A DNA stretch of 64,000 nucleotides from Adineta vaga (GCA_021613535.1 CP075495.1:15252001-15316000); one strand, 5' to 3'. Positions 24,416-56,129 are shown, numbered from the stretch's first letter. Notes: generated by a model from the letters alone, not told the origin. Program-made: numbers and translations.

Positions 24416-25111
24416 AATATAATGTCCAATGTGAGCATGAGTGTTTCTCTCTGCCGAGTCGACAGCTAACGTTAGTATCCTAGAGAATTGGCGTACATGT
24501 ACACAGTAAATTATTGACTGTTTCTATTCGGTCATGATTATAAAAGAACTACAAAGAAAATCCAGAAAAAAATAACTGCATTTTATACAGAAATTCACTG
24601 GTGAAATCAACAAATATTACATATTATCCATGCGAAGAGTTACATTATATCGGAATTTGAAAATATTTACTTATTTTAGTTCTGAAGGATATGACAAATA
24701 TCCTTCATAATTTTGGTTTGAATAAAATAAACATTGCACATAATGTTTGGTTTTTCGGAAAAGTACAAGAAAAATCACATGAGTCAGATAAGAATTTAAA
24801 TTTGTCTATTGGTGTATTTATTTGATAGTTTTAGTAGAGAAAAGAATTTTGTTTTATTTCAGAATTTCATTCTATGATTTGACAAAATTCAATAAATGAA
24901 GATTTCGTAATTTGTTAAAAATTTAAATGTAATAAATTATTTTGAATACGTCTTTGAAAAACAACTATATAGATATATATATAACTAAAATATAAGTATT
25001 GTGATCGAAGTCTTAAAACTATTTGTATCGTCGAGTATTATAATAAAATAAACAAAAAAAGTATAAATAATTGAAATGGATTTTATTCAATGGGATAGAA
25101 AGTGGAATTAT

Positions 25112-25613
25112 TTAATATAAAATAATTTGTGTGACAAAAAAACAACTACATATAGACAAAAGAATGAGATTTAATAATATAGAATGTGTTATAGCATTGT
25201 TACAATTATCTTTATTGGAACAACAATAAAGTGTTGTCAGTGAACCAGTATCTCGAGTTGTATCACAAACGGCACTTGAACCTTCTCGAATAACAGTACC
25301 CGATGGGAAATAACCCACATCTGCCCAATGCATTGTTTTCTAACCAATGAAGAAAAAAAATCATAAGAAAATCACATAAAAACATGACTTACACGACATG
25401 ACTTAAAACCTGATTGAGATAGAGTACTTGTTGTCGATAGATCTCCTTTGTAAGGATCATAACAATCAATATTGGTAGTACTTGAACATATAATACAATT
25501 TAATTCATATGTCATGGAGATCATGACTAAATATACAATATACATAAATAATGTTTTGCAAATACGACAGACTTACTTAAAATAATCAAACATGACCAAA
25601 GAATAATATTCAT
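25112..25613 (-). CDS. Ly6/three-finger GPI-anchored protein, copy 2 (3 exons)
   Basis: Paralog of 21925-22428 with the same exon layout; CCSNKDNCN followed by a hydrophobic tail. Confidence 0.8.
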
Positions 25614-26670
25614 TTTGTTATATCTTTTAGTCAAATCTAAGTAATCAGATTCAACGAAATCCTAGAACGTACTATATTTAATTCTTACGTTTAATCGAAT
25701 AATTTTGAAAAGAAAAAAAAATTTAAAATCAACTACTTTACATATTTTTCTTTCTTTGAAAATATTGATTTTATTAAAGCAAATGATAACATCTCAATAT
25801 GGTAAATATGATAATTAATAGATACAATATAGATGCATTTTATATGGAGTAAATCAATACATAATACATCATTAGAAAAATATTTATTAAAATATAATAT
25901 TTGAATAGAAGTTCGTTGAAATATTCAAATCATTTTTCTTTTTCTCTTGGTTTGTTCCATAAAAAGCAAGAAAATATCAGCACGAATATAGGACTATATC
26001 ATATAATCTATTTCTTCATAAGTTTGGTAGAAACCACTGAATCTTAACCCGCATATGCCGAAAACAGAGTGAAATAAAATCATGCCTAATTTTTGCCATA
26101 GTAATGCACGAAAATGGTTTAGAACAGCTTTTCAGCGCAGGCCCTCTAAGACTAAAATGTGAAACTAGCATAATCTATTTGTAATAATAGCCTCCATGTA
26201 ATGGAGGGGAGAGCGAGAAGATCAGACCAAATTTTTCGACTTAAAACTTACACTCACTTATTTTTCTCCGAAAAATATACGTAAGTTCCATGAAATCAAA
26301 ATGCATATAAACAAATGGATTATACATCAATCTCACTTATTCTTATCTTGGTAATTTCATATGATAAGAATATTTTGAGTGATTTATCAATTATAATCGA
26401 TTGATTACATGGTTTAATCTGTCGGCATATATAGATAGATTCAAGTGGAGTAAATAATGGTCTCTCGTATATTCCGAAAGTTCTCACAAAAGAATTATAT
26501 AGACAGATAATATTTAGATTTATGATATCTTCGATATAAGCCTTATATTATATATTATTTTAGCTAATAGGATTTTGATAAGATATGTAATGAAAGAATG
26601 ATCCAAACAAAATCTGAAGCCTTATTCTTCCTATAAAAGCACAGCAATACATGCTGAAAGAATTAATAAA

Positions 26671-27279
26671 ATGACAAAGGTTTCCTTTTTCGTCTCAATA
26701 AGTATTTGGTGTCTGTTTTGTCAATTTGCACAGGCAAATGAACAATGTCCAGCAGGTTTTCAATGTGCAAAATCAATGAAAGCATCATCAATTAAATCCA
26801 ACGACGAATATGAACTGATACTAATTCCTTGTCCGCCAGGTACAGCTAGTGAACTTGGACAATATGGTTGTGCACCATGTGAACTAGGTTATTACGCCAA
26901 TGCCAGTGGTACTGCTTCATGTTCTGTCTGCCCTATAGGTGCCATGTGTGCAGATGCCGCGAAAAGTCCAGCACCTTGCCCACTAGGAACGTATGTATCT
27001 TGTACTGGTCAAACGTTTTGCAGTCCCTGTGCACTTGGCACATATACACCTAGTGTTGGATCGACTCACTGTATCGACTGTCCTGTAGGTGCCATGTGTC
27101 CAGATGCCACGAAAAGTCCAACACCTTGCCCACGAGGAACGTATGCATCTTGTACTGGTCAAGCTTGCTGCAGTCCCTGTGCACTTGGCACATACACACC
27201 TAATGCTGGATCGATACACTGTATCAAATGTCCTCCAGGTGTGCAATGCCCCAAGAGTCCAACAACCGCTTGTGGTTAG
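26671..27279 (+). CDS. Secreted Cys-rich repeat protein (GCC2/GCC3, ephrin-receptor-like CPxGTY repeats), copy A, 202 aa
   Basis: Signal peptide; repeated CPxGTY..GxxxCxPCxLGTY units with a 50-aa period; TATA-like ctataaaa at about 26631. Confidence 0.85.
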   Translation: MTKVSFFVSISIWCLFCQFAQANEQCPAGFQCAKSMKASSIKSNDEYELILIPCPPGTASELGQYGCAPCELGYYANASGTASCSVCPIGAMCADAAKSPAPCPLGTYVSCTGQTFCSPCALGTYTPSVGSTHCIDCPVGAMCPDATKSPTPCPRGTYASCTGQACCSPCALGTYTPNAGSIHCIKCPPGVQCPKSPTTACG

Positions 27280-27566
27280 TTACTTTTCAGAGTCTGATAT
27301 TCTTTCGATCATTTATCTACACTCAAACATATTACTATATTGAAAAACACGATCTATATGGAATAATTTGGTTAGGACTAAGTATCTATTTTTGACAATT
27401 AATCGGAACATCTCGTTAGAACATTCCAAGTACTTATAATTAGTTACAATATTGTCAATTGAGCTTAAGTCTGAACCTGTATTGAATGCTCTTGACTTTC
27501 TCGAGACTAATTACATTAATCACCTAATATTTATTGAGATTTAACTACTGTCACGAGTAAAATATA

Positions 27567-28124
27567 ATGAACTATTTGATTAAGTGTATGTATTTATTTA
27601 TAGATGGTGATCTTCTATCTACTAAACACCGGAACATTCTCTCTGAATTTGCTGGGAAAAAGGATCTGAAATGGATACTTCTTTACAAGGCTACACGAGA
27701 CGGTTTTGGAGGGGCAGATTTTCACCGTCTCTGTGATGGTCATGCACAAACGATGAGTATTATCCAATCGAAGCAACGCTTTTTATTTGGTGGATATGCC
27801 AATCGTGCTTGGAATTCATCATCTAGCTGGATTAATGATCCACGTGCCTTCATTTTTACTTTGACAAATCCAAATAATATTCTTCCAACTCGCTACCTGA
27901 TACAAGGTGGAAAGGAACAACATGCGTACATCGTTAACCCGCTATATGGTCCAATATTTGGTGCTGGTCTTGATATAAGTGTAGTAGATAAAAGCAATGT
28001 AACTGATTGCACTATAAACTTCCCAAGCACCTACACTGATACAACAGGAAAAGGTAAAGCCACGTTTACAGGCAATTCTACATTTCAAACAAGTGAAATC
28101 GAAGTTTATAAATTACTTGATTGA
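27567..28124 (+). CDS. TLDc-domain protein, copy A
   Basis: WILLYKATRDGFGGADFHRLCDG, FLFGGY, AFIFTL, YGPIFGAG, EIEVYK. A splice acceptor at 27603 is also possible. Confidence 0.88.
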   Translation: MNYLIKCMYLFIDGDLLSTKHRNILSEFAGKKDLKWILLYKATRDGFGGADFHRLCDGHAQTMSIIQSKQRFLFGGYANRAWNSSSSWINDPRAFIFTLTNPNNILPTRYLIQGGKEQHAYIVNPLYGPIFGAGLDISVVDKSNVTDCTINFPSTYTDTTGKGKATFTGNSTFQTSEIEVYKLLD

Positions 28125-28196
28125 AAAAAAACAAGAGACAAAATAAACGGTTTTTTGTTCGTTTAAACAATAAAACGTTTTTGTCACTATGACAAC

Positions 28197-28472
28197 CAAG
28201 GGGGAAAAATCGATACTCCGTACTCCGGTACTCCACCTTTCTCCAGCAATACTCCAATCTACTCCAGTCTACTCCAATAATACTTCAGCCTTCTTCAGTA
28301 ATACTCCAGCCTTCTTCAGTAATACTCCAGCTTACTCCACTAATACTCCAACATATTTTGTAAAACTGAAATATCGACTGTTTTCTCTTGCTAGAGTAGA
28401 GATGGAGTATGGTGGAGTACAATGGAGAATGGGCGAAGTATTGGAGTACTGGAGTATCGCTTTCTCCCCTTG
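28197..28472. mobile_element. 276-bp MITE with imperfect ~29-bp TIRs and degenerate 8-bp TSD (hAT-like)
   Basis: Left end caagggggaaaaatcgatactcc; right end reverse-complements to caaggggagaaagcgatactcc. Flanks atgacaac/atagcaac. Internal 21-bp repeats. Absent in copy B (single atgagaac at about 40978). Confidence 0.85.
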
Positions 28473-28628
28473 ATAGCAACTGAAATAGACACGACGATTT
28501 TGTTCCTAGTTCCTTGTAGTCCTCTTAGTTTTTGACTAAATGTTTATGAATCACCAATATCATCATAATGCGATCGCTTTTTAGGTTAATTTACTTTCTT
28601 AGTTCGACAACTACTATAAAATCTTTAT

Positions 28629-30107
28629 TTATAAACCTGGATCCATTAAGAAACGAAAGAGTTCATCATTATCCTCTACATAGCTCAGTTCTGAATTGGT
28701 AGATATTGCATTAGTAAATAATTCGGATGCATATTGTCGCTTTCGAGAAAATCGTGCAGAAGGATTTTCATCTAAAGAAAACATATTCTATTTATATAAG
28801 GAAATCAAAGAAATAAAATAAAACAAACCTTCATCTTTTGCTTGATTTTCTTCTTCAATTGTTAAATTATCTTGATCATTATGAATGAGAAATGAATCAT
28901 GTTCACGATATGAAACAATTGTATCACTATGATTTTGAAGTAAATGTCGTAACATTTTATCTTGAATACCATTCGTATTAGCTCTATCCATTGGATCATC
29001 TTCAACATCAAAATCAAATTGATAAAGTTGAGCAAGTTCATCATAGGTAAAATGACGAGCAAGTTGTTTAGCATCAACAACACCTACAGAAACATTAACA
29101 TAAATATACGATAGTCAGAAGAAAAAAAGTAGAAACTAACGATGAAACATTGCTTGTTTAGTAATTTGTCGTTTATAAATTTTCTCTTCCATTGTTCCTT
29201 TAACCATTAATCGATAAATATATACAGGTTTTGTTTGACCAAGTCGATATGAACGAAACATTGCTTGAAGATCATGAGCTAAAAAGAAAAATCAAAATCA
29301 TCTATATCATACGGATAACAAACGAACCTGGATTCCAACTAGTATCCAAAATAATGACACGATTAGCCGAAAAAAGATTCACACCTAAACCACCGGCAAG
29401 TGTAGAAATTAAATATAAACGACTACGAGAATTATTTGTATCATTGAATAATTTCATATCAGCTGCTCGTTTTTTTATTGAAACAGAACCTACAAAATGA
29501 AATCAATGTTTATTTTCTTTTTCTTCTTACATAAAACAATCGAAATCGTACATACCATCCATTCGAAAGTAATCTACACCTTTTTTCCATTGAGATTCCG
29601 GATGTTGTGCACTCCAATACGCAAGACATTGTTCAAAATAGTCAAGAGTCATTAAATGTCGAGTAAAAACAAGTAATTTATCACCAATTGATTCACATTC
29701 GTCCAAAATTGCTTTGAATATATCAAATTTTCCTGAGAGTTCAAACTAAAAATATATTAACAAACGAAAGACAAATGCGTTTTTTTCTTCTATAAAGAAA
29801 AACAACAAATGAAATTTACATCGAATTGTGAACCATGTGGATCAAATATATTAAACCACCATTGTTCTTTCATTGCTTTCAAAATCTTTTCTTCTGGGCT
29901 AGCAATTGACATATTAGGTGTTGGTAATACATCTCGAATTCTTTCCGTATCATTATCAAATTCATCTTTAATCATCGCATCTATTACAGTTTGATCATCA
30001 TCTTTCAATTTTTTATTATAATAATCAATAAAATAGGGTTGAAGAAGCCATGGATGCTAAAAAATCAAAAACATCATAAGATTGAAATTATGAATAAAAG
30101 AAACAAA
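28629..30107 (-). pseudogene. 3' half of the SNF2 helicase gene, cut off by the hAT left end
   Basis: Near-identical to 41124-42600; the 5' half is replaced by transposon DNA from 30108. Confidence 0.9.
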
Positions 30108-31091
30108 TAGGCATGCTCCAATTCCAATTCTAGAATTAGAATTGGTCGGAACCGAAAAAAATTGGGATTGGAATCGAATGGAATTGAAAAGAATTGGGAT
30201 TGGAATTGATAGGAATTGACTCAAAATAATCAAAACTTCAACAGAATTGGTGGTATTTGGTATAGAATTGATCTGAAACCACTAGAATCTATATGAAATT
30301 GTATGTTATTAGTTGGGACAGATCATTAATGACGTTGAATCAGTGCGTATCGTTACAATTCATATAGAATTGATCTAATTCAGGTAGAATTCATGAAAAT
30401 CTTTCTCTGTCTGACTCAATATTAATTAGAACTCATACGAAACTGAACATTGAGTATCGATCACTTCTTGATGATGACTATAATTGTTTGAAATTCGAAT
30501 ACATCTAAAAATAAGTGTTAAGAGTTTTCCAATATTATCATCTTATAGAGTAGGTCAGTGGTAGTTTTGTTAATATTTGTTTATTTCTCTATTATTTCAC
30601 GAATATGAGAAAAAATTGATTTTCAGCGGTAAACGAAATGATAGTATTGACTATGTTGTTCCATTTTTACCGTGAAAAAATTCGAAAAATCGGCAATTAA
30701 TCATTGATATATTCTGAAACTGTGTTGAAGTTATATGTTTATTTGGGTTTCGCAAAAAGGAGTGGATATAATATATAATAGGGTATTTCTTTTTTTCTCG
30801 CTTCTATTGTGCACTGTAGTTATAGTTTCATTAGAACATGATTATCTATCTGGTTTGAAAATATGTAAAAATCAAATCACATATTTTCTTTTAAAAGTTA
30901 TTTTCGATTATAAAATTCGTTTATAAATATTATCTAATTGAAAAGTATTTTATTGGAAAAATCTTCAAAACTTTGAACATTGATATTTTACATTACGCTT
31001 ATTTAAAATAAGTAATGAACAGCAGCGTACTCTTCAAAATTTCTGATTGGTGTAAAAACTATTCATTGAACATATGTGTATATATGTCATA

Positions 31092-32510
31092 CTAGCGGAG
31101 ATACCCACTGCAAACACGACACAATTTAAATTTTTTATCTACAGCAGTGCTTTTCTTATCACCCAAGGACCTCTCCGTTCGTATTTATCCGTCGTGTATC
31201 AAAAAATCCTCACACCCTCCTTTTCCGCCCTGACTTAGTTAGTTTTATCTTTCAGCTCGTCACTCAGCGTACGTTATCTGTCTTCCAGACGTCTTTCTCC
31301 TCCGTACTGAGATCCTTCCTATATCCCTTTTCGCGTCATGCACCAGGTCTTTTTTTCAAAACTTCGTATCTCTTCATTCGTTCTTTCCTACTGATCTTGT
31401 CTTGCTATGCATACGATATACAGCTCTGTTCTTTTTAAATCCACTCCTACTGTCCCGCTGCAACTCCAGTCCCATTCTACACCCACTGTCCCGCTGCAAC
31501 TCCAGTCCCATTCTACACCCACTGTCCCGCTGCAACTCCAGTCCCATTCTACACCTACTGTCGCGGCGCAAGTCATTCTCTACTTTATAAACTTCACTTC
31601 TACTCTATACCGGTAGAATAGGCATTTCACTCCAGATTCAGTTTTTTTGAGAACCCAACCCACGCTTTGTAGTTGTCTGTCCTAGATGCAGACACCCACA
31701 CACACCCTCATTCCTATATGCCATCTTGAGAGCGAAATTTCACACACGCCGCCATCCCGTCCCTTGATGGCCATTCTAACCCCTTGTCGACCTTCCTCTG
31801 GATCGAGAGAAGCATTGTGGAAAGTTTGGTGACGTTAGCTGTTCTAGGGAACGTACGCATAACGAACAAACTTTCTTCTTTATATATATATATATATAGA
31901 TAGATAGATAGATAGATATAGATTAAAGAACCTTTAATTGTCACATTTATTGCAAGAAATAAATAGTATCAAATAAAAAAACCTCAAAACTGCAGCACAT
32001 TCTGTAAGTTTCTACCAAAATAACGACAATTGAAATTCAATACGACTTGGGTGAAATTTCACCCAGACACCGATTCCCACCCTCAAATCAATATATTTTG
32101 ATACGGAACGTGTAAATTATCGTAGATGTGCGCTCAGACGGCATGCGGCCGCTTTCGCTATCAATTATTTAAAGTTTTTGAAATGCTGCAATCCTATTGG
32201 TCAGTTTCATAGATTGCCCGTAGGAAGCGTAGAATTCTTTTTTTTTAAAACAAAGTAAATGGCGACCTTCCCGTGGGCGTAGAGAAGCATTGTGGAAAGT
32301 TTGGGAATGTTAGCTATCATTGAACTGCCTGGGTGAAATTTCACCCACACTCCCCACCCTCACCCCCTGATGACCATTCTAACCCTATGTCGACCTTTCC
32401 TGGGACCTAACGAAGCATCGTAGAAAGTTTGGTGATCGTGGCTATTACAGCGACTGAATGCATAGCGAACAGACAGACAGACAAACTTTCTTCTTTATAT
32501 ATATAGAAGA
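31092..32510 (-). mobile_element. Non-autonomous Helitron-like element nested in the hAT
   Basis: On the minus strand it begins A|TCttctatatatataaag at 32510 and ends CTAG|T at 31092. No TSD; GC-richer than the flanks. A second copy of the 5' end lies near 31790-31920. Confidence 0.7.
31441..31562. repeat. 36-bp minisatellite, about 3.3 copies
   Basis: Unit ctgtcccgctgcaactccagtcccattctacaccca in tandem, with no spacers. Confidence 0.92.
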
Positions 32511-34120
32511 TGTCACATATGTAGAACAGAACAGGAAAAAAACCGTTGACATTTTATTTCATCAATGCATTCGTTAAAAACTAAAACATAGATCTGTTAC
32601 TGTAAAACTTAAGTTCTATTTCGTAAAAACGATACAAACGCCGAATATATTTCAATATAAAATCTTATTATGACTGAAAGTAGACAGTTCTCAATCGATA
32701 TAAATGGCTAGCCTATTGATTTTGCTTTTTGTTCGATAAAAATAAAACATATAAACAGAAATGATTTATTTTTATTTTTAGTGATAACTTCTCGATATTC
32801 ATATCATTATATAATAATTCAATGATTCGTTCTCGAAAATCTCTTCCATCACGAAGTGTTACAACTGCTGTTACTACTACCGAAGTTCTTCCTTCGTTTG
32901 ATGATAATTTCGATGAAGAACGAACTATAGGTGGATGTATAACTCATGCATCATCCGAAGAAATAAACAAAGATTCAAATTTAAGTGGTATTAGCGCATT
33001 AGTTTCAGAAGGTGGTAGTACTACATTGATTAATATAGGTGAAGGAAAAAAACTTAAATCTAATGTATGGAATTTTGCAAAAAAGCTTTCAAACGAAGCA
33101 GCTCTATGTATGGAATGCAAAACGAATTAAACGATCATTGAAACTCCATATGGTGGTACGTCGACATTACGAAAACATTTAGTAGCTAAACATAATTTAA
33201 TTCATCTTCAATTACCATTAAGTGCACGTGTCAAAACCAGTAATAAAATTTTGCGTGAAAAAAATATCTTCTCGATCATTTGGCCAATATTGCTGTTTTT
33301 GAAGATGGACGAACGTTTGGTGATTTACGAAAGGGTGACATGGCGAAATTCTTAGCTGAAGCAATACCAGGTAACCTTTTTTCTAGACTCACTAATATTT
33401 AAAATATTTAAAAAATAAGTTTTTCTTGTTAGATTGTTTGTTATATAAAGAGAATGTGGTGTATTCATACCTCTGTGTTCTTCGCAAAGTTGTCCTGATA
33501 TTTGTATCGTCGAAAGACAGCTTTATTTTGAATAAAATTGGTTTTAGAAAATACTCCATTAGGTTTTTTTGAATAAAAGATTCTAAGTGTTCAAAGGATA
33601 GCTGTTAGTAATAGTTTTGCTTTTATATCTGATATTCGAGATTTTTAATAATTATTAGGGCATGCAAATTACAAACGGATCAAAACTTATTCATTTTTTG
33701 TTTAGGCTATATACCGCCTCACAGAAATCAGGTTCAACAAGAATTAAAATATTTAACTCAAATACTACGTCGCCGAAAATTTCTTCTAATAAGATTTGAT
33801 TGTAAATCATTCTTCAACTAATATGCAAACGTTTCTATTTCTAGCCAATTCAAATGTGAATGATGATGTCGACGATGAGGACGATAGTGACGAAGAAAAT
33901 CAGGATTTAATTGTAGACACATGGATTAATGAATAAATTACTGGTGATAGCTTTAACATGGATGGTGATGAAGAAGAAGATATTATTACAACTAAAATCG
34001 AATTAGCTAAAACAATTCAGAAAGGTCGTTCATCAATTAAAATGATTAAACGATCACAAATTATAATGATGTTTATTAATGATGAAAAGAAACGTCACAA
34101 AGTGAAACGTCAATTAAGAA

Positions 34121-37100
34121 TTTTTTTTTTTTTCTTTTTGGTAGCAAGGCTTTATTGTATAAACAACACTACAAGATAGATTCAACGGATAGTATCGTTG
34201 TATACATAAGCTGGAAGAGAACAAAAAAAAGGACCCGTGACTTATGTCTTTTGTCCAGAAAGAAAGAAGCAGAACGATAGAAAAGGATACATATGTGATG
34301 ATAGTGTATGTACATGGAATGACGTATGAAAGGTCTTAGTGGTGTGGTAAGAATAGAAGTAAATAGAATAAAGAAGGAAAGAAAACGAGAAAGACGCTGG
34401 AATATATATGATGCATTAGATCAGTAGATGTATTGACTCGATTTCATATTATATATAAGATCGAGAGAAAGAATTTGCTGGTTGTTGTGTGAATCAGCCG
34501 ATGCATTGACTCGGTATCATATTGCATATAACTACGAGCAAAGAATTGGCTGAATATATCGATAATTCGTTATATAGTTTGGTTGATTTGATATAATATA
34601 TAAGAACGAGAAAAGAAATAGCTGTATTGTGTTCGAATTTGATATAACAATTCTTGTACAGATTCAACTAACACAAGAATAGTCTATTCTCTCGACGTTA
34701 CTATTATATATATAACGGTTGGTGATTTCTTTTACACTTTGTCAAATATGCCTTGTAGAAGGTTCTTCAGTGTAATGTCGTTGTTGGAAGATGCCGTTGA
34801 TATGGATTTTTTAAGTAATCCTATGGCATAGTCTTTGATTTTGGGGATGTTGGTGATCTTGTGGATGTAGTTGACTGATGTATATATGGGTAGACCGAGT
34901 GCAGCTCTAATTGCTTTGTTTTGGATGATTTGTAATCGGTCCCATATTTTTTGATCAGCAGTAAGGAGAATTGGATAACCGTATATGATAACTGTGCGTA
35001 CTATTGATTTGAAAATATTTATCATCGTCTTGTTGTTGGGGTCTTGTGCTTTTCTCGATAAATATCTAAGAAGACCGATCCGAGGAGCAATCTTCGTTTC
35101 GATATGATCGAGATGTGTTCGCCATTTTAATCTTTTGTCGATGATTATACCCAAGTATCGTGTAGAATCCAGTGGCTTGATGATGTTGTTTTCGACTTTC
35201 ACTATCACTGGATTTTTGTAATTCTTTCTTGGGTGTATGCTGAAATGTATCAGCTCTGTTTTTGTTGGTTGCAATTTCAATTTCCATGATTTGCACCAAC
35301 TTTCGAATGCATTTATGGATTGTTGTAATCTAGATCTAAGTGATGTTAAGGTGTTGCTAGATGTCCATAATGCAGTGTCATCGGCGAATAGCCCGTGTTC
35401 TGTATGAGTCGGTATTCCATTCATCGAATCTGCCGTGTATATGATGTATAATAGAGGTGATAACGGAGATCCTTGTGGTGTACCGCTCTTCAGATTAAAT
35501 TGACGTGATAATATATTTTCAATTTCAATAGCAGCCGTTCGATTGCTTAAGAAAGAGATCAGGTAGTTGATGATGTATTTGGGAAGACGTAGATCATTAA
35601 GCTTGTATATCAAACCATCGTGCCATACCGAATCAAAAGCAGCTTTGATGTCGAAAAGAATGACAGCTGAGTGACGTCTTCGACGGGGTCGTCTCAGTTG
35701 TCCTTCAGCATATCTTTCTAGTCGCACGATGTTGTATATAGTGCTTTTACCTGGTCTGAATCCGGCTTGATGTTGTGGTAATATATTTCGTCGTTCAAGT
35801 TCTAGCATTAGTCGTTGTTTGATTATTTTCTCCAGTAGTTTGCCGAGGCAGCTAAGGAAACTAATTGGCCGATAACTAGACGGGTGTTGTTTGTCTTTCT
35901 TCGGCTTTAGTAGAAGAATAATGTTAGCTTTTTTCCACATTGCTGGAATATAACCTTGTTTCAAAATTGCATTGAACAGATTTGTTATATGCTGGACAAG
36001 TAATTTTGAATGATTCTTTAAACACCTGTTATGGATGTTGTCTGGACCAGTGGAGCTGTTTCGAAGTTGTCTAATATGAAATTTGACTTCTTCTACTTTT
36101 ATTAGCTTCCACTTGGATGTGTTTGTTAAGGTTATATTACCATTCTTGACTTTGTTTGCTTGACTTGTTACTTGATCATGAAACGGCAGTGTATCAGCAG
36201 TAAGAGAGTAGACTTCATTTTCGAAATAATCTGCAAATAGATCTGCTTTCTCCTTTTCTGACGTTGCTGTCGTGTTGCTGTATTTCATGATGCTAGTAAA
36301 GGTTTGTTTGATCCGTTTGTTGTGGAACTTACGTACCGTCACCCAAACTTTGTCCGAATACATCTTCTTATGACATAATGAAGACATTAGCTTGTTAAAG
36401 TTGTTTCTTCTGTGATTTCGAAGTGAATTTGTCAGTAAGACTTTGGAGTTGTAGTATAGATGTTTGTCGATTACATCCCCGGTCTTCTTCCATTTTCGAT
36501 ATGTTTGATGTTTTTGTTTAATCAAACTTTTCGAAACTTCACTTGGTGTGAAAAAAGTATTCGTTTGTTTACTTTGTGGAACGGCTTCTCTTGTTGCTAC
36601 CAATATAGTGTTGGTGATAAACGACGTGTATTCTTCTATATCTAATGCTGAACTTAAAGAACGATCATTATTCCATAACATCAGTTGTTGATCTAACTTG
36701 TATCTGAATTCTGGCCAATTTGCTGCTTTGAAACTAAATGATATTCTTGGAGATGCTGGTTTAGGTTCAACTCCAGTGGGAATATCGAAGGTTAATGGTT
36801 TGTGACCGGTTAAGGTGCCGATTGTTGGATGTGTTTCAACATTTGATATAAACGAAAGAAGTGGTCGACTAGCTAGAATCCAATCTAGTTTGACTTCATA
36901 ATAATTCTTTTCAAACGTTGGACTATCATCGTCGACACATTCAATATACCCTTCTTTGAATAGTTCTTGCAGCTGTCTTCCTCTAGCATTTGCTTGTTGT
37001 GATCCCATATTGTATAATGTTGCGTTAAGATCACCCATAATTATACAGTTGTTGTTTATGTTGTAGAGCTCATAGAATAAGTTGATGTCGATCTTTGCTT

Positions 37101-37829
37101 TTGGTGGAACGTAAATGGAGGATATCAGTATTGATTTGAATGTTTTAGTTTCAATCTCTACTGCTATCGCTTCATTTCTAGATATTGTTTTGTTTAAACT
37201 TTCTCGACATTTGATGTGTTGCTTGATTGCTAATAGGACTCCTCCACCAGCTTGTCCTACTCTATCATTTCTGAAGATGTTGTAACCCAACAGAGTGAAT
37301 GGTCGATCACTCTTTAGGTTAGTTTCATTCACAGAGATAATATCGTACTTGGAGAATCTGGCTAGAAGTTCATCTTTGTGTTTGGTAATTGAGTTAATGT
37401 TAATGTGGCATAGACTAATCATCGTTGTTGCTTGTTTTAAGATTCTTGTTATCATTTGTCGATGTGTTCAAAAAGCTGTTAGAAGTGCGGGCTCTCTTGG
37501 TCGACTGCGAACCTTTTGTCTGCTGTTTGGCAACTTTTGATGCTTTAGCTGTTGAGGATGGTGTTGGTTTCTTCGAAGTGATAGTCGATGTTGTGGTCGA
37601 ATTATCAGCTTCAGTTTTTTGTCGTGATTTGTTTGCGGTGTATTTAACTGATTGACTTTCTTCATTCGAATCAGAGTCAGAGCCAGTTAACACCTCCATT
37701 TCTACGTCATCGTCATTGCCTCCTAGGCTTTTGATTGTTTTTTCAATCTTTTTGATCTTCTGAAGAAGTGCTTTAAATAGACGATTAGTATTTGCTTCGA
37801 TGAGTGTTTCCATTTTGCTTGTAAGAGCA
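34121..37829 (-). mobile_element. 5'-truncated non-LTR retrotransposon (APE-RT, Jockey/I-group-like) with poly(A) tail
   Basis: T-run at 34121-34139 with minus-strand AATAAA at 34152-34157; ~600-nt 3' UTR; intact ORF2; C-terminal part of ORF1 overlapping the ORF2 start. Confidence 0.95.
34732..37455 (-). CDS. LINE ORF2: AP-like endonuclease + reverse transcriptase, 907 aa, uninterrupted
   Basis: APE motifs ISVNET, GGGVLL, IYVPP, MGDLNA, LDWIL, GHKP. RT motifs GPDNI, YRPIS, QAGFRPG, FDIKAAFDSVWH, GTPQGSPLSP, LFADD, YLGI. No RNase H recognised. Confidence 0.97.
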   Translation of the reverse strand: MITRILKQATTMISLCHININSITKHKDELLARFSKYDIISVNETNLKSDRPFTLLGYNIFRNDRVGQAGGGVLLAIKQHIKCRESLNKTISRNEAIAVEIETKTFKSILISSIYVPPKAKIDINLFYELYNINNNCIIMGDLNATLYNMGSQQANARGRQLQELFKEGYIECVDDDSPTFEKNYYEVKLDWILASRPLLSFISNVETHPTIGTLTGHKPLTFDIPTGVEPKPASPRISFSFKAANWPEFRYKLDQQLMLWNNDRSLSSALDIEEYTSFITNTILVATREAVPQSKQTNTFFTPSEVSKSLIKQKHQTYRKWKKTGDVIDKHLYYNSKVLLTNSLRNHRRNNFNKLMSSLCHKKMYSDKVWVTVRKFHNKRIKQTFTSIMKYSNTTATSEKEKADLFADYFENEVYSLTADTLPFHDQVTSQANKVKNGNITLTNTSKWKLIKVEEVKFHIRQLRNSSTGPDNIHNRCLKNHSKLLVQHITNLFNAILKQGYIPAMWKKANIILLLKPKKDKQHPSSYRPISFLSCLGKLLEKIIKQRLMLELERRNILPQHQAGFRPGKSTIYNIVRLERYAEGQLRRPRRRRHSAVILFDIKAAFDSVWHDGLIYKLNDLRLPKYIINYLISFLSNRTAAIEIENILSRQFNLKSGTPQGSPLSPLLYIIYTADSMNGIPTHTEHGLFADDTALWTSSNTLTSLRSRLQQSINAFESWCKSWKLKLQPTKTELIHFSIHPRKNYKNPVIVKVENNIIKPLDSTRYLGIIIDKRLKWRTHLDHIETKIAPRIGLLRYLSRKAQDPNNKTMINIFKSIVRTVIIYGYPILLTADQKIWDRLQIIQNKAIRAALGLPIYTSVNYIHKITNIPKIKDYAIGLLKKSISTASSNNDITLKNLLQGIFDKV

Positions 37830-37837
37830 TATAGCAT
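37415..37837 (-). CDS. C-terminal remnant of LINE ORF1
   Basis: 140-aa ORF with a coiled-coil-like then K/S/T-rich tail, overlapping ORF2 by 41 nt. Its first ATG lies in the junction sequence shared with the Ly6 exon. Confidence 0.7.
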   Translation of the reverse strand: MLYALTSKMETLIEANTNRLFKALLQKIKKIEKTIKSLGGNDDDVEMEVLTGSDSDSNEESQSVKYTANKSRQKTEADNSTTTSTITSKKPTPSSTAKASKVAKQQTKGSQSTKRARTSNSFLNTSTNDNKNLKTSNNDD

Positions 37838-38253
37838 TGTTACAATTATCTTTATTAGAACAACAATAAAGTGTTGTCAGTGAACCAGTATCTCGAGTTG
37901 TATCACAAACGGCACTTGAACCTTCTCGAATAACAGTACCCGATGGAAAATAACCCACATCTGCCCAATACATTGTTTTCTAATCAATGAAGAAAAAAAA
38001 TCATAAGAAAATCACATAAAAATATGACTTACACGACATGACTTGAAACCTGATTGAGATAGAGTACTTGTTGTCGATAGATCTCCTTTGTAAGGATCAT
38101 AACAATTAATATTGGTAGTACTTGAACATATAATACAATTTAATTCATATGTCATGGAGATCATGACTAAATATACAATATACATAAATAATGTTTTGCA
38201 AATACGACAGACTTACTTAAAATAATCAAACATGACCAAAGAATAATATTCAT
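37785..38253 (-). CDS. Ly6/three-finger copy 3, chimeric: GPI tail replaced by LINE-derived residues
   Basis: Exons 1-2 and the Cys core are intact; reads CCSNKDNCNNAI then CSYKQNGNTHRSKY* from LINE sequence. Confidence 0.7.
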
Positions 38254-39310
38254 TTTGTTATATCTTTTAGTCAAATCTAAGTAATCAGATTCAACGAAAT
38301 CCTAGAACGTACTATATTTAATTCTTACGTTTAATCGAATAATTTTGAAAAGAAAAAAAAATTTAAAATCAACTACTTTACATATTTTTCTTTCTTTGAA
38401 AATATTGATTTTATTAAAGCAAATGATAACATCTCAATATGGTAAATATGATAATTAATAGATACAATATAGATGCATTTTATATGGAGTAAATCAATAC
38501 ATAATACATCATTAGAAAAATATTTATTAAAATATAATATTTGAATAGAAGTTCGTTGAAATATTCAAATCATTTTTCTTTTTCTCTTGGTTTGTTCCAT
38601 AAAAAGCAAGAAAATATCAGCACGAATATAGGACTATATCATATAATCTATTTCTTCATAAGTTTGGTAGAAACCACTGAATCTTAACCCGCATATGCCG
38701 AAAACAGAGTGAAATAAAATCATGCCTAATTTTTGCCATAGTAATGCACGAAAATGGTTTAGAACAGCTTTTCAGCGCAGGCCCTCTAAGACTAAAATGT
38801 GAAACTAGCATAATCTATTTGTAATAATAGCCTCCATGTAATGGAGGGGAGAGCGAGAAGATCAGACCAAATTTTTCGACTTAAAACTTACACTCACTTA
38901 TTTTTCTCCGAAAAATATACGTAAGTTCCATGAAATCAAAATGCATATAGACAAATGGATTATACATCAATCTCACTTATTCTTATCTTGGTAATTTCAT
39001 ATGATAAGAATATTTTGAGTGATTTATCAATTATAATCGATTGATTACATGGTTTAATCTGTCGGCATATATAGATAGATTCAAGTGGAGTAAATAATGG
39101 TCTCTCGTATATTCCGAAAGTTCTCACAAAAGAATTATATAGACAGATAATATTTAGATTTATGATATCTTCGATATAAGCCTTATATTATATATTATTT
39201 TAGCTAATAGGATTTTGATAAGATATGTAATGAAAGAATGATCCAAACAAAATCTGAAGCCTTATTCTTCCTATAAAAGCACAGCAATACATGCTGAAAG
39301 AATTAATAAA

Positions 39311-40069
39311 ATGACAAAGGTTTCCTTTTTCGTCTCAATAAGTATTTGGTGTCTGTTTTGTCAATTTGCACAGGCAAATGAACAATGTCCAGCAGGTTTT
39401 CAATGTGCAAAATCAATGAAAGCATCATCAATTAAATCCAACGACGAATATGAACTGATACTAATTCCTTGTCCGCCAGGTACAGCTAGTGAACTTGGAC
39501 AATATGGTTGTGCACCATGTGAACTAGGTTATTACGCCAATGCCAGTGGTACTGCTTCATGTTCTGTCTGCCCTATAGGTGCCATGTGTGCAGATGCCGC
39601 GAAAAGTCCAGCACCTTGCCCACTAGGAACGTATGTATCTTGTACTGGTCAAACGTTTTGCAGTCCCTGTGCACTTGGCACATACACAACTAATGCTGGA
39701 TCGACTCACTGTATTGACTGTCCTGTAGGTGCCATGTGTCCAGATGCCGCGAAAAGTCCAGCACCTTGCCCACTAGGAACGTATGCATCTTGTACTGGTC
39801 AAGCTCACTGTAGTCCCTGTGCACTTGGCACATACACAACTAATGCTGGATCGACTCACTGTATCGACTGTCCTGTAGGTGCCATGTGTCCGGATGCCAC
39901 GAAAAGTCCAACACCTTGCCCACGAGGAACGTATGCATCTTGTACTGGTCAAGCTTGCTGCAGTCCCTGTGCACTTGGCACATACACACCTAATGCTGGA
40001 TCGATACACTGTATCAAATGTCCTCCAGGTGTGCAATGCCCCAAGAGTCCAACAACCGCTTGTGGTTAG
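39311..40069 (+). CDS. Secreted Cys-rich repeat protein, copy B, 252 aa
   Basis: Same as 26671-27279 plus one in-frame 50-aa unit. Confidence 0.85.
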   Translation: MTKVSFFVSISIWCLFCQFAQANEQCPAGFQCAKSMKASSIKSNDEYELILIPCPPGTASELGQYGCAPCELGYYANASGTASCSVCPIGAMCADAAKSPAPCPLGTYVSCTGQTFCSPCALGTYTTNAGSTHCIDCPVGAMCPDAAKSPAPCPLGTYASCTGQAHCSPCALGTYTTNAGSTHCIDCPVGAMCPDATKSPTPCPRGTYASCTGQACCSPCALGTYTPNAGSIHCIKCPPGVQCPKSPTTACG

Positions 40070-40355
40070 TTACTTTTCAGAGTCTGATATTCTTTCGATC
40101 ATTTATCTACACTCAAACATATTACTATATTGAAAAACACGATCTATATGGAATAATTTGGTTAGACTAAGTATCTATTTTTGACAATTAATCGGAACAT
40201 CTCGTTAGAACATTCCAAGTACTTATAATTAGTTACAATATTGTCAATTGAGCTTAAGTCTGAACCTGTATTGAATGCTCTTGACTTTCTCGAGACTAAT
40301 TACATTAATCACCTAATATTTATTGAGATTTAACTACTGTCACGAGTAAAATATA

Positions 40356-40913
40356 ATGAACTATTTGATTAAGTGTATGTATTTATTTATAGATGGTGAT
40401 CTTCTATCTACTAAACACCGGAACATTCTCTCTGAATTTGCTGGGAAAAAGGATCTGAAATGGATACTTCTTTACAAGGCTACACGAGACGGTTTTGGAG
40501 GGGCAGATTTTCACCGTCTCTGTGATGGTCATGCACAAACGATGAGTATTATCCAATCGAAGCAACGCTTTTTATTTGGTGGATATGCCAATCGTGCTTG
40601 GAATTCATCATCTAGCTGGATTAATGATCCACGTGCCTTCATTTTTACTTTGACAAATCCAAATAATATTCTTCCAACTCGCTACCTGATACAAGGTGGA
40701 AAGGAACAACATGCGTACATCGTTAACCCGCTATATGGTCCAATATTTGGTGCTGGTCTTGATATAAGTGTAGTAGATAAAAGCAATGTAACTGATTGCA
40801 CTATAAACTTCCCAAGCACCTACACTGATACAACAGGAAAAGGTAAAGCCACGTTTACAGGCAATTCTACATTTCAAACAAGTGAAATCGAAGTTTATAA
40901 ATTACTTGATTGA
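40356..40913 (+). CDS. TLDc-domain protein, copy B
   Basis: Translation identical to 27567-28124. Confidence 0.88.
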   Translation: MNYLIKCMYLFIDGDLLSTKHRNILSEFAGKKDLKWILLYKATRDGFGGADFHRLCDGHAQTMSIIQSKQRFLFGGYANRAWNSSSSWINDPRAFIFTLTNPNNILPTRYLIQGGKEQHAYIVNPLYGPIFGAGLDISVVDKSNVTDCTINFPSTYTDTTGKGKATFTGNSTFQTSEIEVYKLLD

Positions 40914-41123
40914 AAAAAAACAAGAGACAAAATAAACGGTTTTTTGTTCGTTTAAACAATAAAACGTTTTTGTCACTATGAGAACTAAAATAAACAAGAC
41001 GATTTTGTTCCTAGTCCCCTTAGTTTTTGACTAAATGTTTATGAATCACCAATATCATCATAATGCGATCGCTTTTTAGGTTAATTTACTTTCTTAGTTC
41101 GACAACTACTATAAAATCTTTAT

Positions 41124-44100
41124 TTATAAACCTGGATCCATTAAGAAACGAAAGAGTTCATCATTATCCTCTACATAGCTCAGTTCTGAATTGGTAGATA
41201 TTGCATTAGTAAATAATTCGGATGCATATTGTCGCTTTCGAGAAAATCGTGCAGAAGGATTTTCATCTAAAGAAAACATATTCTATTTATATAAGGAAAT
41301 CAAAGAAATAAAATAAAACAAACCTTCATCTTTTGCTTGATTTTCTTCTTCAATTGTTAAATTATCTTGATCATTATGAATGAGAAATGAATCATGTTCA
41401 CGATATGAAACAATTGTATCACTATGATTTTGAAGTAAATGTCGTAACATTTTATCTTGAATACCATTCGTATTAGCTCTATCCATTGGATCATCTTCAA
41501 CATCAAAATCAAATTGATAAAGTTGAGCAAGTTCATCATAGGTAAAATGACGAGCAAGTTGTTTAGCATCAACAACACCTACAGAAACATTAACATAAAT
41601 ATACGATAGTCAGAAGAAAAAAAGTAGAAACTAACGATGAAACATTGCTTGTTTAGTAATTTGTCGTTTATAAATTTTCTCTTCCATTGTTCCTTTAACC
41701 ATTAATCGATAAATATATACAGGTTTTGTTTGACCAAGTCGATATGAACGAAACATTGCTTGAAGATCATGAGCTAAAAAGAAAAATCAAAATCATCTAT
41801 ATCATACGGATAACAAACGAACCTGGATTCCAACTAGTATCCAAAATAATGACACGATTAGCCGAAAAAAGATTCACACCTAAACCACCGGCAAGTGTAG
41901 AAATTAAATATAAACGACTACGAGAATTATTTGTATCATTGAATAATTTCATATCAGCTGCTCGTTTTTTTATTGAAACAGAACCTACAAAATGAAATCA
42001 ATGTTTATTTTCTTTTTCTTCTTACATAAAACAATCGAAATCGTACATACCATCCATTCGAAAGTAATCTACACCTTTTTTCCATTGAGATTCCGGATGT
42101 TGTGCACTCCAATACGCAAGACATTGTTCAAAATAGTCAAGAGTCATTAAATGTCGAGTAAAAACAAGTAATTTATCACCAATTGATTCACATTCATCCA
42201 AAATTGCTTTGAATATATCAAATTTTCCTGATAGTTCAAACTAAAAATATATTAACAAACGAAAGACAAATGTGTTTTTTTTTCTTCAATAAAGAAAAAC
42301 AAATGAAATTTACATCGAATTGTGAACCATGTGGATCAAATATATTAAACCACCATTGTTCTTTCATTGCTTTCAAAATCTTTTCTTCTGGGCTAGCAAT
42401 TGACATATTAGGTGTTGGTAATACATCTCGAATTCTTTCCGTATCATTATCAAATTCATCTTTAATCATCGCATCTATTACAGTTTGATCATCATCTTTC
42501 AATTTTTTATTATAATAATCAATAAAATAGGGTTGAAGAAGCCATGGATGCTAAAAAATCAAAAACATCATAAGATTGAAATTATGAATAAAAGAAACGA
42601 ACCGTCCAAATTTTCATTAAATATTGATAATCTGCAAACAATTTCGTTACATCTATACGAAACAATATCGAATGAATTAGGAATATTCGATTGTATTTTC
42701 GAAAATACTTACTGAGCTTTGCAGTAAGATTTTGATATTGAATATAAGTTTCATAAAGTTTTCGTTGTAATGGTCGACATTTGATTTTTATTGCTAAAGA
42801 GATAAAAGATTAGATGTAGAAAACAAAAGAATGAAAACAAAAGAATACCATATTCGAATTTTTGTGGTAAAAATGAACGTAAAACTTCAAAACCTTGACG
42901 ATCGATCAAAGGTTCTAAACGTCGACGAAGTGCATAGATACGACGACGCATATAATCAACATCTTCTTTCGAACTATCTCGATGTTGTCCAGCTTCAATT
43001 GGCTTACGAAATCGATCGGAAAAAAGTGATTCTGTTCCTAAAATTAAAAAAAAAATTTTTCACCAAGAAATATTCGTTAAACAACATGAAACTAACCGAG
43101 AAAATTCGGTTTACAAAAATGAACCATAGCATAATATTCTTTCAGATTATTTTGCATCGGTGTGCCTGTTAGAATAATACGGCGACGGGTACGAATTTGA
43201 TTTAATGCACAAGCAATTCCACTTTTGAGATTTTTACTGCAAAGAATAAAATACATTGAATTCAATTGATTCATTTAATAGTTAGAGAACTTACATCATA
43301 TGACCTTCATCACAAACGATTAGATCAGGACCAGGATTTCGTAGATATTGACCTGAAATCATCGAGATGTAATAAATAGATTGAAATCACTAGAAAACAT
43401 CATACGATATTTTTGAATATTAGCTAATTCAGCAGGTGTATGTGTCTTTTTATTCTTCTTTTCAAACAGTCGACGAACATCATATGGACTATCTTCAATT
43501 GTATAAGTTAATAGACGATACATTTCATATCCCATTAAAAGAATACCACCATTTTCATGCCACTATTAAATAATATCAATAGAATTTTATTGAATGATGC
43601 TCAGATCGAAAGATATGTGTATACTCACATGACGAAGAAATTGTTCACGATCATTTGCTCGAACATCATCAGTACTGAATAAATAGATATTGATCGTTGG
43701 ATGAAGATCGTGTAACCATTGATGAAATTCATTTTTCCAACTAAATATAGCAAATAATTATCATACACTTTATTTTAGATTAATTTTACTTGATTGTCGT
43801 ATTGATTGGACATAAAATAAGTACTCGTTTAATATGTGTTAAATTCGCATGTCGAAAAAGTGTGTGAAGAAATACAATTGTTGTAAACGTCTTTCCTAAA
43901 CCCATACAATGTGCAAGAATAGCACCTGAACCTCCTTGATCTTCTTGATTTCTATTATTGATACCAGCTGAAATGTTTTCTATTGATTGAAATACTTGCT
44001 TCCATAAGAATTTGACACCTTCAACTATATTTATCAAAGATAATTGTTTGAAAGAGATTCTAATTATAATTTCTTACTTTGATGAGGTTTCATATCGATA

Positions 44101-44798
44101 ACGAGATGTAGTGAAACATCAATAATAGGATTTTGTGTTTCAGGATCCTTTTCAAGTACTAATTCAAATTCGATATCTTGTCGTTGATGAAATGCTTCAA
44201 TTAATTCACCATTATATAATCGTTGTTTTCGGTCACGTTCATTTAGATCTCTATCTTCATCTGTTGATTTAGGGCACAAGATAAACTCGAGTGTTTCGTT
44301 ATTACATTTTTGGATTGTTTCATTACCATTTTCGTTGGGAATTTCTTCTAAAGAATAAAAAGAATTTAAGTAAATAATATAGAAGAAGAAGAATCGTACG
44401 TTCAGGAGTATTTTCCAATTGTTCACTCTCTATTTCTATTGTTTGAGAATCAGAAGAATCTATTCGAATCCTTTTATTGTTAGGAGAACATAAAGTTTGT
44501 TCGAAGTTAGTCATATCATGCCAAGATAGAGTTAGATTGGGAGAGATTACTCGTTTAACTGGGAAACTTCTATTGGATGTCATCGATTGTTTTGATGGGA
44601 AATATTTTTCTGATCTAGGATTGAAATTTCAATCGAAAAGTTCGTATCGATACGTATTTAAAAAATCGCTTACGAAAGAATTGATTGAGTAGGTGTATAA
44701 ATATCTTGATTGAATTGTTGACTATCCGTTGAATAGTATAGATCAGAGGTTAGCTGACAAACAGTATTACCATATTCACTCAATTGTTGCTCACACAT
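41124..44798 (-). CDS. SNF2-family helicase/ATPase, ATRX/ARIP4 (RAD54L2)-like, multi-exon
   Basis: [11 protein letters not shown] (motif I), [11 protein letters not shown] (II), [10 protein letters not shown] (III), [35 protein letters not shown]. In-frame splicing from an ATG at 44798. Confidence 0.9.
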
Positions 44799-55875: not shown

Positions 55876-56129
55876 AATTTCAATACTTAAATTAAAATGT
55901 GATCTGATTAAAACAATTCGTAATGATATTATTTTATTGATTAATTTAACATGTTCACTAGAAAATAATTTCAATATTATAATCAAAAAATATTTTCCTT
56001 TAATTTTCCAATGAAACATATCTTTTATTAATCCAAAGAAGAAATTATTTATTCATTTGTGAAAAAAATTAATCTGATAATTTTATTTCTTTGAAAAGAT
56101 GTCACTTGAATATCAATCTCATCTTTATT

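Follow-up and report, generated by a model that had tools for sequence, protein, structure and literature searches.

A rotifer block of three genes, 4.8-4.9 kb in length, is present twice in tandem in a subtelomeric region of chromosome 2 of Adineta vaga, ∼1 Mb from the chromosome end. We analysed it within a window of 64,000 nucleotides (CP075495.1:15252001-15316000), free of Ns, from the AV20 assembly, which is a collapsed haploid assembly (NextDenovo) of a heterozygous diploid. Self-BLAST and MAFFT alignment showed directly that copy A (25190-30107, 4918 nt) and copy B (37830-42601, 4772 nt) are direct repeats with a period of 12.6 kb, which bears out the preliminary description of a direct ∼4.9-kb duplication bridged by a hAT element and a LINE. 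The spacer between the copies consists of the left half of the hAT (30108-34121), with a nested 1.4-kb element inside, followed by a minus-strand LINE (34122-37829). The features of the locus are as follows.

21921-22581, minus strand: older tandem paralogue of the three-finger (Ly6/uPAR-like) gene, 77-78% identity to 25108-25792
25190-30107, plus strand: copy A, with three-finger gene, Cys-repeat + TLDc gene and SNF2 3′ half
28197-28472, unstranded: MITE of 276 nt, in copy A only, with ∼22-nt terminal inverted repeats
30108-31091, plus strand: hAT remnant, part 1, from the left terminus; 83% identity to C3, the sole other copy of this hAT in the genome
31092-32509, unstranded: nested repeat of 1.42 kb that contains 36-nt tandem repeats; numerous copies in the genome (87-96% identity)
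32510-34121, plus strand: hAT remnant, part 2; 90% identity to C3; stops within the transposase frame
34122-37829, minus strand: 5′-truncated LINE; poly(A) as a T run at 34122-34139, ORF2 intact, ORF1 tail
37830-42601, plus strand: copy B, with cut three-finger gene, Cys-repeat + TLDc gene and SNF2 3′ half
42602-44583, minus strand: 5′ half of SNF2 (ATRX/ARIP4-like), with SNF2-related-domain exons at 43092-43274 and 43786-44037

Genes in and beside the two copies

Gene exons were verified singly by reference, not as joined spliced models. In copy A, the three-finger gene is intact on the minus strand, its last exon extending to the left of 25190, and homology to the older paralogue likewise crosses this boundary. 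It is followed by the Cys-repeat + TLDc gene on the plus strand (26671-28124) and by the 3′ half only of SNF2 on the minus strand (Helicase_C exon at 29302-29457). The three-finger gene of copy B is severed in its last exon, lacks ∼25 C-terminal residues and is fused in the same orientation to the LINE, while the Cys-repeat + TLDc gene (39311-40913) contains one additional 50-aa unit compared with A. The SNF2 3′ half of copy B runs on into the downstream sequence; both SNF2 halves occur together only here, so that the intact SNF2 gene in cis proposed earlier is indeed present.

The boundary 42601/42602 between B and its right flank falls between the two bases of the GT splice donor of a 51-nt SNF2 intron, and corresponds to an unoccupied hAT target site. 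Specifically, B carries a single copy of the 8-bp target (GAAACGAA) with intron and exon sequence directly after it, leaving a clean empty hAT site at 42594-42602. A giant target-site duplication (TSD) in cis predicts a second hAT left half after B; given the clean empty site found there instead, the preliminary description was right that B is not a simple giant TSD of A.

Both outer flanks, left of A and right of B, are native contexts, and the sole new join is that between the end of A and the start of B. Since the three-finger gene and its paralogue homology run across 25190 and SNF2 runs across 42601, with a single new join inside, the locus has the form of a tandem duplication.

Transposons and their junctions

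The hAT-type element starts exactly at the end of copy A, and the start of C3 (locus L010), in a different flank, coincides with it to the nucleotide, which substantiates the proposal that A ends at the hAT left end (30108). The nested repeat is flanked by 8-bp target duplications (31084-31091 and 32510-32517). What is missing from the hAT, as observed directly, is its right half of ∼1.9 kb (size taken from C3), including the hAT dimerisation domain and the right terminus. In agreement with the earlier failure to find a right end, this half is absent from the window and occurs elsewhere in the assembly only in C3 itself; C3, too, showed no right terminal inverted repeat. On Pfam search, C3 passed the cutoff for PF05699 (E 1.2e-7) and matched zf-BED weakly (E 0.016), and the surviving frames of the window copy, from which the PF05699-bearing half is gone, gave no Pfam matches. 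With two decayed copies at 83-90% identity, the family looks old. The MITE in copy A sits where the TLDc and SNF2 genes converge, between their 3′ ends, is flanked by 8-bp target duplications at 28189-28196 and 28473-28480, and has its closest genomic relative at 88% identity.

The position of a hAT terminus exactly at the end of copy A raises the question of whether the hAT itself made the duplication. With Ac-type elements, tandem direct duplications are known to retain a transposon at their join, and alternative (sister-chromatid) transposition in the style of maize Ac/Ds, followed by LINE-mediated removal of the hAT right end, could thus be considered. However, the excision joint at the B/right flank should then hold two modified 8-bp targets, whereas a single copy is seen and no excision footprint is present, and only two decayed copies of the family exist. 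We consider this origin barely credible.

The LINE contains an intact ORF2 (34732-37455, 907 aa) with an APE endonuclease (PF03372/PF14529) and a reverse transcriptase (PF00078), the two activities that define APE-type non-LTR retrotransposons, and the tail of ORF1 (37415-37829); Pfam search of ORF1 in a full-length relative returned PRE_C2HC alone, below threshold. Its poly(A) joins the hAT at 34121/34122, which maps inside a 244-aa open frame of C3 between the BED-like finger and the hAT dimerisation domain; the LINE poly(A) thus sits within the hAT transposase, as previously described. This 3′ junction, with poly(A) at an AATT/AATTC site of the hAT, resembles that of normal target-primed reverse transcription (TPRT).

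In contrast, the 5′ junction is unusual. Copy B had been said to start at the LINE 5′ end (37830), and the LINE does abut B there; its end at 37829, though, is a truncation inside ORF1 with ∼1.27 kb missing, relatives sharing conserved sequence upstream of that point. Six of six full-length relatives carry TSDs of 10-13 bp, but none is found at the window copy, in agreement with the preliminary description. Membership in the LINE family stands, and the window insertion is atypical in lacking a TSD; resolution of its 5′ end was abnormal, unlike that of its six relatives. Only 0-1 nt of microhomology is seen where this end joins copy B. Within the 100-Mb assembly, no relative of the sublineage exceeds 92% identity.

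This last result bears on one of two routes by which the duplication had been suggested to arise. Unequal crossover between two LINEs, one inside the hAT on homologue 1 and one in the three-finger gene on homologue 2, would yield the observed order and leave the hybrid LINE without flanking TSDs, and non-allelic homologous recombination between misaligned homologues has been proposed for A. vaga chromosome ends (PMC13564844). Yet it requires two independent insertions in the same orientation, ∼9 kb apart and on opposite homologues, in a sublineage without another copy above 92%, and there is no sign of a hybrid within the LINE. We therefore regard it as very improbable; of the earlier account of origins, the anatomy, the exclusion of a giant TSD and the abnormal 5′ resolution of the LINE stand, but the crossover route is disfavoured.

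Divergence between the copies

Alignment of A with B (MAFFT) gave 28 mismatches in ∼4630 aligned columns (0.6%), together with gaps for an extra 150-nt Cys unit in B, a 10-nt indel, two 1-nt indels and a 284-nt stretch of A (28193-28476) made up of the 276-nt MITE and its 8-nt target duplication. B lacks the hAT and the MITE and differs by one unit in its Cys array, as first reported. The SNPs, as directly observed, sit at both edges (2.5% each) and beside the indels, with only 1 SNP in 3812 nt (0.03%) in the interior, and this clustering at heterology boundaries is significant (permutation p ∼0.0006). The pattern indicates gene conversion between sequences that already carried these boundaries. 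It does not support the earlier impression that the copies look like two haplotypes, because the SNPs are not spread like allelic divergence; post-duplication changes in copy A explain the differences in hAT, MITE and repeat number equally well. Native outer flanks, one novel inner junction and edge-concentrated divergence, the marks of a tandem segmental duplication with gene conversion, were all found here.

The near-identical interior, with divergence kept at the edges and beside indels, resembles the concerted evolution of young segmental duplications, with the difference that here the same picture might arise between alleles. Allele-allele conversion could yield it as well, and the pattern is compatible with more than one direction and number of conversion tracts. 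Against the upstream three-finger paralogue, seven edge SNPs could be compared, the derived state being in B at five and in A at two. Conversion of the left edge by this paralogue was rejected, A and B agreeing at nearly all sites at which the paralogue differs.

That alleles converting each other between heterozygous insertions would leave such SNPs also fits an assembly artefact, in which A and B are two alleles of a single-copy locus threaded serially by the haploid NextDenovo assembly. The collapsed nature of the assembly makes this conceivable, and nearly all uncollapsed haplotypes of A. vaga are subtelomeric (PMC8494291), as is the window. Moreover, the master copy of the LINE sublineage is missing from the assembly, so that hemizygous copies exist. 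The locus resembles heterotype false duplications (PMC8494291) in lying subtelomerically in a haploid assembly of a heterozygous diploid and in having copies that differ by indels and transposons; unlike these, it is gap-free, its bridging sequence is unique and it has no shared repeat able to make a false overlap. The absence of Ns speaks against an artefact, and real molecules must exist for each of the junctions of A with the hAT, of the hAT with poly(A) and of the LINE with B. Neither the hAT half nor the LINE has a second copy in the assembly (nearest relatives at 83-90% and 92% respectively), and a false join would therefore need either another, nearly identical LINE on the other haplotype, within ∼9 kb and in the same orientation, or a chimeric read that by chance connects two points 9 kb apart. 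Nor does the nested repeat provide a seam, being a true insertion with its own TSD. We judge an artefact quite unlikely. A mis-join through the nested 1.4-kb repeat in particular is ruled out by its 8-bp TSD and by the hAT being collinear in C3. In an exact look-up of ten junction-spanning and control ORFs in a protein collection, none was found, controls included. Gene-copy counts for TLDc, three-finger and SNF2 in this region can be trusted only after a read-level check.

Proposed order of events and significance

The rearrangement is real, transposon-associated and fairly ordinary. Our leading account, to which we give a probability of roughly 0.45, is that the locus is a genuine tandem segmental duplication of the three-gene block whose original junction was overwritten by transposons: the duplication came first, the hAT and MITE then entered A, and a LINE insertion with target-site deletion followed. 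We infer this order, including the precedence of the duplication over the LINE. A segment of slightly more than 4.9 kb would first have been duplicated in tandem, the upstream copy ending in a dead SNF2 3′ fragment and the downstream copy retaining the complete SNF2. The hAT would then have entered the first intron nucleotides of the dead fragment and later taken up the nested 1.4-kb element, while the MITE inserted into the intergenic part of A and the Cys array changed by one unit. Next, TPRT of the LINE may have begun at a TT/AA-type site within the hAT, with the truncated cDNA end joining downstream and target DNA being lost: the right half of the hAT, the rest of A, the original junction and the start of B up to the last exon of the three-finger gene. 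Finally, gene conversion between A and B would have wiped out nearly all interior differences.

In favour of the duplication having come first, at least 1.9 kb of hAT is gone next to the LINE 5′ end, and every insertion lies in DNA that an earlier duplication would have rendered dispensable (the SNF2 fragment, the intergenic spacer and the second three-finger copy). Young direct duplications are also common nearby; in the window and alternate 10-kb blocks of the neighbouring genome, which served as the base rate, we found a threefold array with a 4-kb period and 97% identity, and a pair 9.5 kb apart with 93% identity. In human L1, truncated insertions are the class tied to target-site deletions of 1-10 kb (PMC11702581). 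The insertion studied here resembles these in its poly(A) at an endonuclease-type A/T site, 5′ truncation, lack of a TSD, 0-1 nt of microhomology at the 5′ join and apparent loss of kilobases of target beside its 5′ end; it differs in being a rotifer APE/RT LINE, in that the full extent of loss is deduced, and in that the deletion would fall within an earlier tandem duplication.

Several observations sit less easily with this order. The original junction and the deleted parts left no trace, hence the duplication step itself is not observed. The four transposon events all have to be placed in A or at the junction, with B receiving none. The old-looking hAT must post-date the split of A and B, a difficulty shared by the haplotype model. 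Finally, the 2.5% divergence beside the left boundary made by the LINE is older than a LINE with an intact ORF2, so either homogenisation of the interior was recent or the deletion ended near the old junction.

The other route suggested previously is a LINE-bridged join between homologues, in which a hAT-bearing homologue 1 primed the LINE, and the cDNA end joined a break 8.9 kb upstream, in the three-finger gene of a homologue 2 without the hAT. The duplication would then have been made in one event, with conversion in cis following later. In its favour, the position exactly between the copies is taken by one LINE that lacks a TSD and has a 3′ junction of the TPRT type, and the clean empty hAT site at the B/right flank fits, implying that the partner was not the sister chromatid; bridging between sister chromatids was rejected, since that site, and not another hAT left half, follows B. 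At 2.5%, the divergence of the edges is near the mean heterozygosity of A. vaga (1.7%; PMC8494291), a species in which both repair from the homologue and unequal exchange close to chromosome ends have been documented (PMC13564844). Tandem duplications and translocations bridged by L1 are documented in human tumours and in cells with induced L1 (10.1101/179705; PMC11702581), and share with the present locus one TPRT-type retroelement that joins direct copies, its cDNA end attached to a distant break. The human cases, however, are somatic, often span megabases and are modelled on sister chromatids, whereas here the event would be germ-line, have a 12.6-kb period and, there being no hAT in B, have to use the homologue as partner. 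Such a join also requires a coincident break in the homologue and a rare class of resolution, L1 duplications being far rarer than deletions, and it implies that, on homologue 1, the splice donor of an essential-looking SNF2 was occupied by a hAT exceeding 6 kb. The supposed haplotype differences are not diagnostic, the neighbourhood yields tandem duplications without LINEs, and a history in cis requires no haplotypes. We therefore consider it unlikely that a germ-line LINE insertion was resolved onto the homologous chromosome, producing in one step a heritable tandem duplication in which the upstream SNF2 allele is disrupted by transposons and the downstream one is intact.

If it were true, the locus would represent natural, fixed, retroelement-bridged break repair between homologues in an asexual animal known for mending shattered chromosomes, and would bear on break repair in bdelloids. 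Copies stemming from different homologues would make this a rare germ-line LINE bridge, a process known until now chiefly from human L1 in tumours. Under the favoured history, in which the duplication preceded the LINE, the locus would be a clean, fully sequenced case from Adineta vaga of transposons accumulating at the join of a young gene duplication and then erasing that join, and one that sharply displays gene conversion, with a homogenised interior and divergence retained at the edges and near indels.

Organization of the duplicated segment

Self-BLAST and global alignment placed two copies of one segment, A and B, in direct orientation within the window, which is C2:15,252,001-15,316,000 of the 100.8-Mb, six-piece assembly searched. 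This haploid assembly, AV20, was made from ONT reads by NextDenovo assembly, purge_dups purging, HyPo polishing and Hi-C scaffolding (PMC8494291), and the window contains no N.

Main features of the locus (window coordinates)
25190-30107, copy A
30108-31091 and 32510-34121, left half of a hAT element
31092-32509, nested 1.42-kb repeat inside the hAT, with an 8-bp target duplication
34122-37829, minus strand, LINE with an intact 907-aa ORF2 carrying endonuclease and reverse-transcriptase domains
37830-42601, copy B

The locus is a tandem duplication, because the contexts left of A and right of B are native and the sole new join lies in the middle. The duplicated block holds a small minus-strand three-finger (Ly6/uPAR-like) gene, a plus-strand gene for a secreted protein with Cys repeats (ephrin-receptor-like) and TLDc, and the 3′ half of a minus-strand SNF2 helicase gene. 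Alignment to an older three-finger paralogue (21921-22581) crosses the A boundary. The right boundary, 42601|42602, divides the GT donor dinucleotide of a 51-nt SNF2 intron; the exon before this intron ends with codons for ...IWT and the next one starts with those for HPW.... Both copies contain the Helicase_C exon, and the SNF2-related-domain exons (43092-44037) lie solely downstream of B. Copy A apparently holds a dead SNF2 3′ fragment, while B and its downstream sequence have both halves of an apparently complete gene, in keeping with the earlier proposal that an intact gene was restored in cis; the exons were checked one at a time. A homoeologous SNF2 copy (G000:C3:10099002-10100408) matches only in SNF2 exons, at 70-76% identity, and DNA-level counterparts of the three-finger and Cys-TLDc genes were not found beside it.

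At the left boundary, B's three-finger gene is interrupted in its last exon and loses ∼25 C-terminal residues. The truncated gene continues into the LINE in the same orientation (37785-37973, minus strand), with a stop after 14 LINE codons, and its predicted product is without the hydrophobic C-terminal tail. The three-finger gene promoter could drive the ORF2-bearing LINE remnant. Exact look-up of ten ORFs (junction and controls) in a protein collection gave zero matches, controls included.

The hAT element and the LINE between the copies

The hAT is collinear with a copy on C3 (L010, G000:C3:19694500-19704499), the sole other one in the genome. It probably belongs to this class because the C3 copy, which runs ∼1.9 kb further, has coding sequence for a BED-like finger and for the dimerisation domain of hAT transposases (PF05699, E 1.2e-7). 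Both copies begin at the identical nucleotide with different flanks, which bears out the claim that A ends exactly at the hAT left terminus. The window copy stops within the transposase frame; no right end had been seen before, and we likewise found no match to the missing half in the window and, elsewhere in the assembly, only the C3 copy. In L010 the hAT frames are broken and no right terminal inverted repeat was found; the element is flanked by a frame bearing an RT and by one with an FG-GAP repeat. The nested repeat, overlooked in the preliminary description, is non-coding, has 36-nt internal tandem repeats and is a true insertion. Its relatives (e.g. L011 and L012) number dozens of copies at 87-96% identity, some missing the tandem-repeat block.

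The LINE poly(A) lies inside the hAT transposase, as described before, and the join falls at AATT|AATTC. LINE relatives are ∼5.2 kb long (ORF1 470 aa, ORF2 900 aa), and the sequence conserved among them extends upstream beyond the position equivalent to 37829; the window LINE is thus ∼1.27 kb short and starts inside ORF1, so that B adjoins a truncation point and not, as had been stated, the LINE 5′ end. All six full-length relatives have clear target duplications of 10-13 bp. The window LINE, as already noticed, has none, and its junction overlap is at most 1 nt. Missing target duplication and truncation together show that the 5′ side of the LINE did not join the reciprocal end that would normally receive it.

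The closest relatives, three copies on C5, are 92% identical, with none higher in the haploid assembly, and ORF2 (34732-37455) has a dN/dS of 0.13 against the best of them (L001, G000:C5:16105500-16112000). The divergence thus accrued in active lineages and the window insertion is young; its master is missing from the haploid assembly and must be either on the unassembled haplotype or lost. The main related family (L004-L009, e.g. G000:C3:15578000-15585000 and C3:14295000-14302000) comprises ∼5.2-kb copies 99% identical to one another, with 10-13 bp target duplications and a variable number of ∼72-nt repeats in the 3′ UTR; long ORF1 and ORF2 frames survive in two of them (L005, L007). This LINE family seems to have been active recently in A. 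vaga.

Hemizygous LINE copies evidently exist, and the window lies ∼1 Mb from a chromosome end, where almost all uncollapsed haplotypes of AV20 map (subtelomeric; PMC8494291); two alleles could therefore have been falsely placed in tandem by the assembly. We consider this improbable: real molecules must carry the junctions A-end|hAT, hAT|poly(A) and LINE|B-start, both the hAT half and the LINE are unique in the assembly, the nested repeat is a genuine insertion, and the error needs either a near-identical second LINE on the other haplotype, ∼9 kb off in the same orientation, or a chance chimeric read linking points 9 kb apart. A real crossover between two LINE copies, also proposed earlier, needs the same coincidence of a second LINE and is very unlikely.

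Divergence between the copies

The copies differ by 28 mismatches in ∼4630 aligned columns (0.6%), 21 of them transitions. Copy B has one additional 150-nt unit, and the other indels are a 284-nt gap in A, one of 10 nt and two of 1 nt. The 284-nt gap corresponds to a MITE of 276 nt, whose termini are inverted over ∼22 nt, together with its 8-bp target duplication; that B lacks the hAT and the MITE and differs in Cys-repeat number was correctly noted before.

Distribution of A/B substitutions
Left edge, 25190-25467: 7 SNPs in 278 nt, 2.5% divergence
Right edge, 29701-30107: 10 SNPs in 407 nt, 2.5% divergence
Beside the 150-nt indel: 5 SNPs, local cluster
Beside the MITE: 5 SNPs, local cluster
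Remaining interior: 1 SNP in 3812 nt, 0.03% divergence

When neighbouring changes were merged, 15 events remained, and on average they lay half as far from the nearest heterology as expected (permutation p about 0.0006). Such a distribution is what repeated gene conversion leaves between sequences in which these boundaries and indels were already present. Freshly juxtaposed haplotypes would look different, and 0.6% is below the mean heterozygosity of 1.7% (PMC8494291); the earlier impression of two haplotypes was thus not upheld. Polarizing the seven left-edge changes with the upstream three-finger paralogue as outgroup assigns five to the truncated B gene and two to A. In the SNF2 part, a 17-nt stretch (29787-29803) distinguishes A from B by six substitutions plus a 1-nt indel, a complex cluster that looks like a single multi-nucleotide event rather than independent SNPs.

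Order of events at the locus

The choice among histories is one we infer. We tentatively favour, at a probability of about 0.45, a tandem duplication preceding all transposon insertions. The hAT, later the nested repeat within it, and the MITE would then have entered copy A; the LINE would have primed in the hAT and its cDNA been joined downstream, deleting the hAT right half, what was left of A, the original junction and the beginning of B. Joining with target loss would resemble 5′-truncated L1 insertions in human, for which such loss is known behaviour (PMC11702581).

The preliminary description had instead proposed that the LINE primed in the hAT on one homologue and was resolved on the other. 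The hAT would then have been hemizygous, and capture of the LINE cDNA by a break lying 8.9 kb upstream on that other homologue would have made the duplication in one event. L1-bridged tandem duplications (10.1101/179705) and, in A. vaga, homologue-templated repair and unequal exchanges (PMC13564844) are documented. Both histories account equally well for the unoccupied hAT site at B|D (D, the sequence right of B), for the MITE and the repeat number, and for edges diverged by 2.5% around an interior homogenised recently. We nevertheless regard inter-homologue joining as less likely, since it requires a less common class of resolution and since duplications arise nearby without LINEs.

A giant target duplication, already discounted in its simple form, and sister-chromatid bridging each predict a second hAT after B, and had the hAT made the duplication, B|D should bear an excision footprint; none of these was seen, and all three models are rejected.

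A threefold direct array (period ∼4.0-4.1 kb, 97% identity) lies 25 kb upstream of the locus at G000:C2:15244589-15254700 (window 1-2700 and beyond), and a downstream direct pair (53312-54516 and 62793-64000, 9.5 kb apart, 92.7% identity) runs past the window end. The latter encloses a second pair (56128-56423 and 61549-61873, 87% identity). This neighbourhood produces tandem duplications without LINEs. The frequency of local duplications and the commoner class of resolution are why duplication before insertion is preferred, and that order would place all insertions in DNA rendered dispensable by the duplication.
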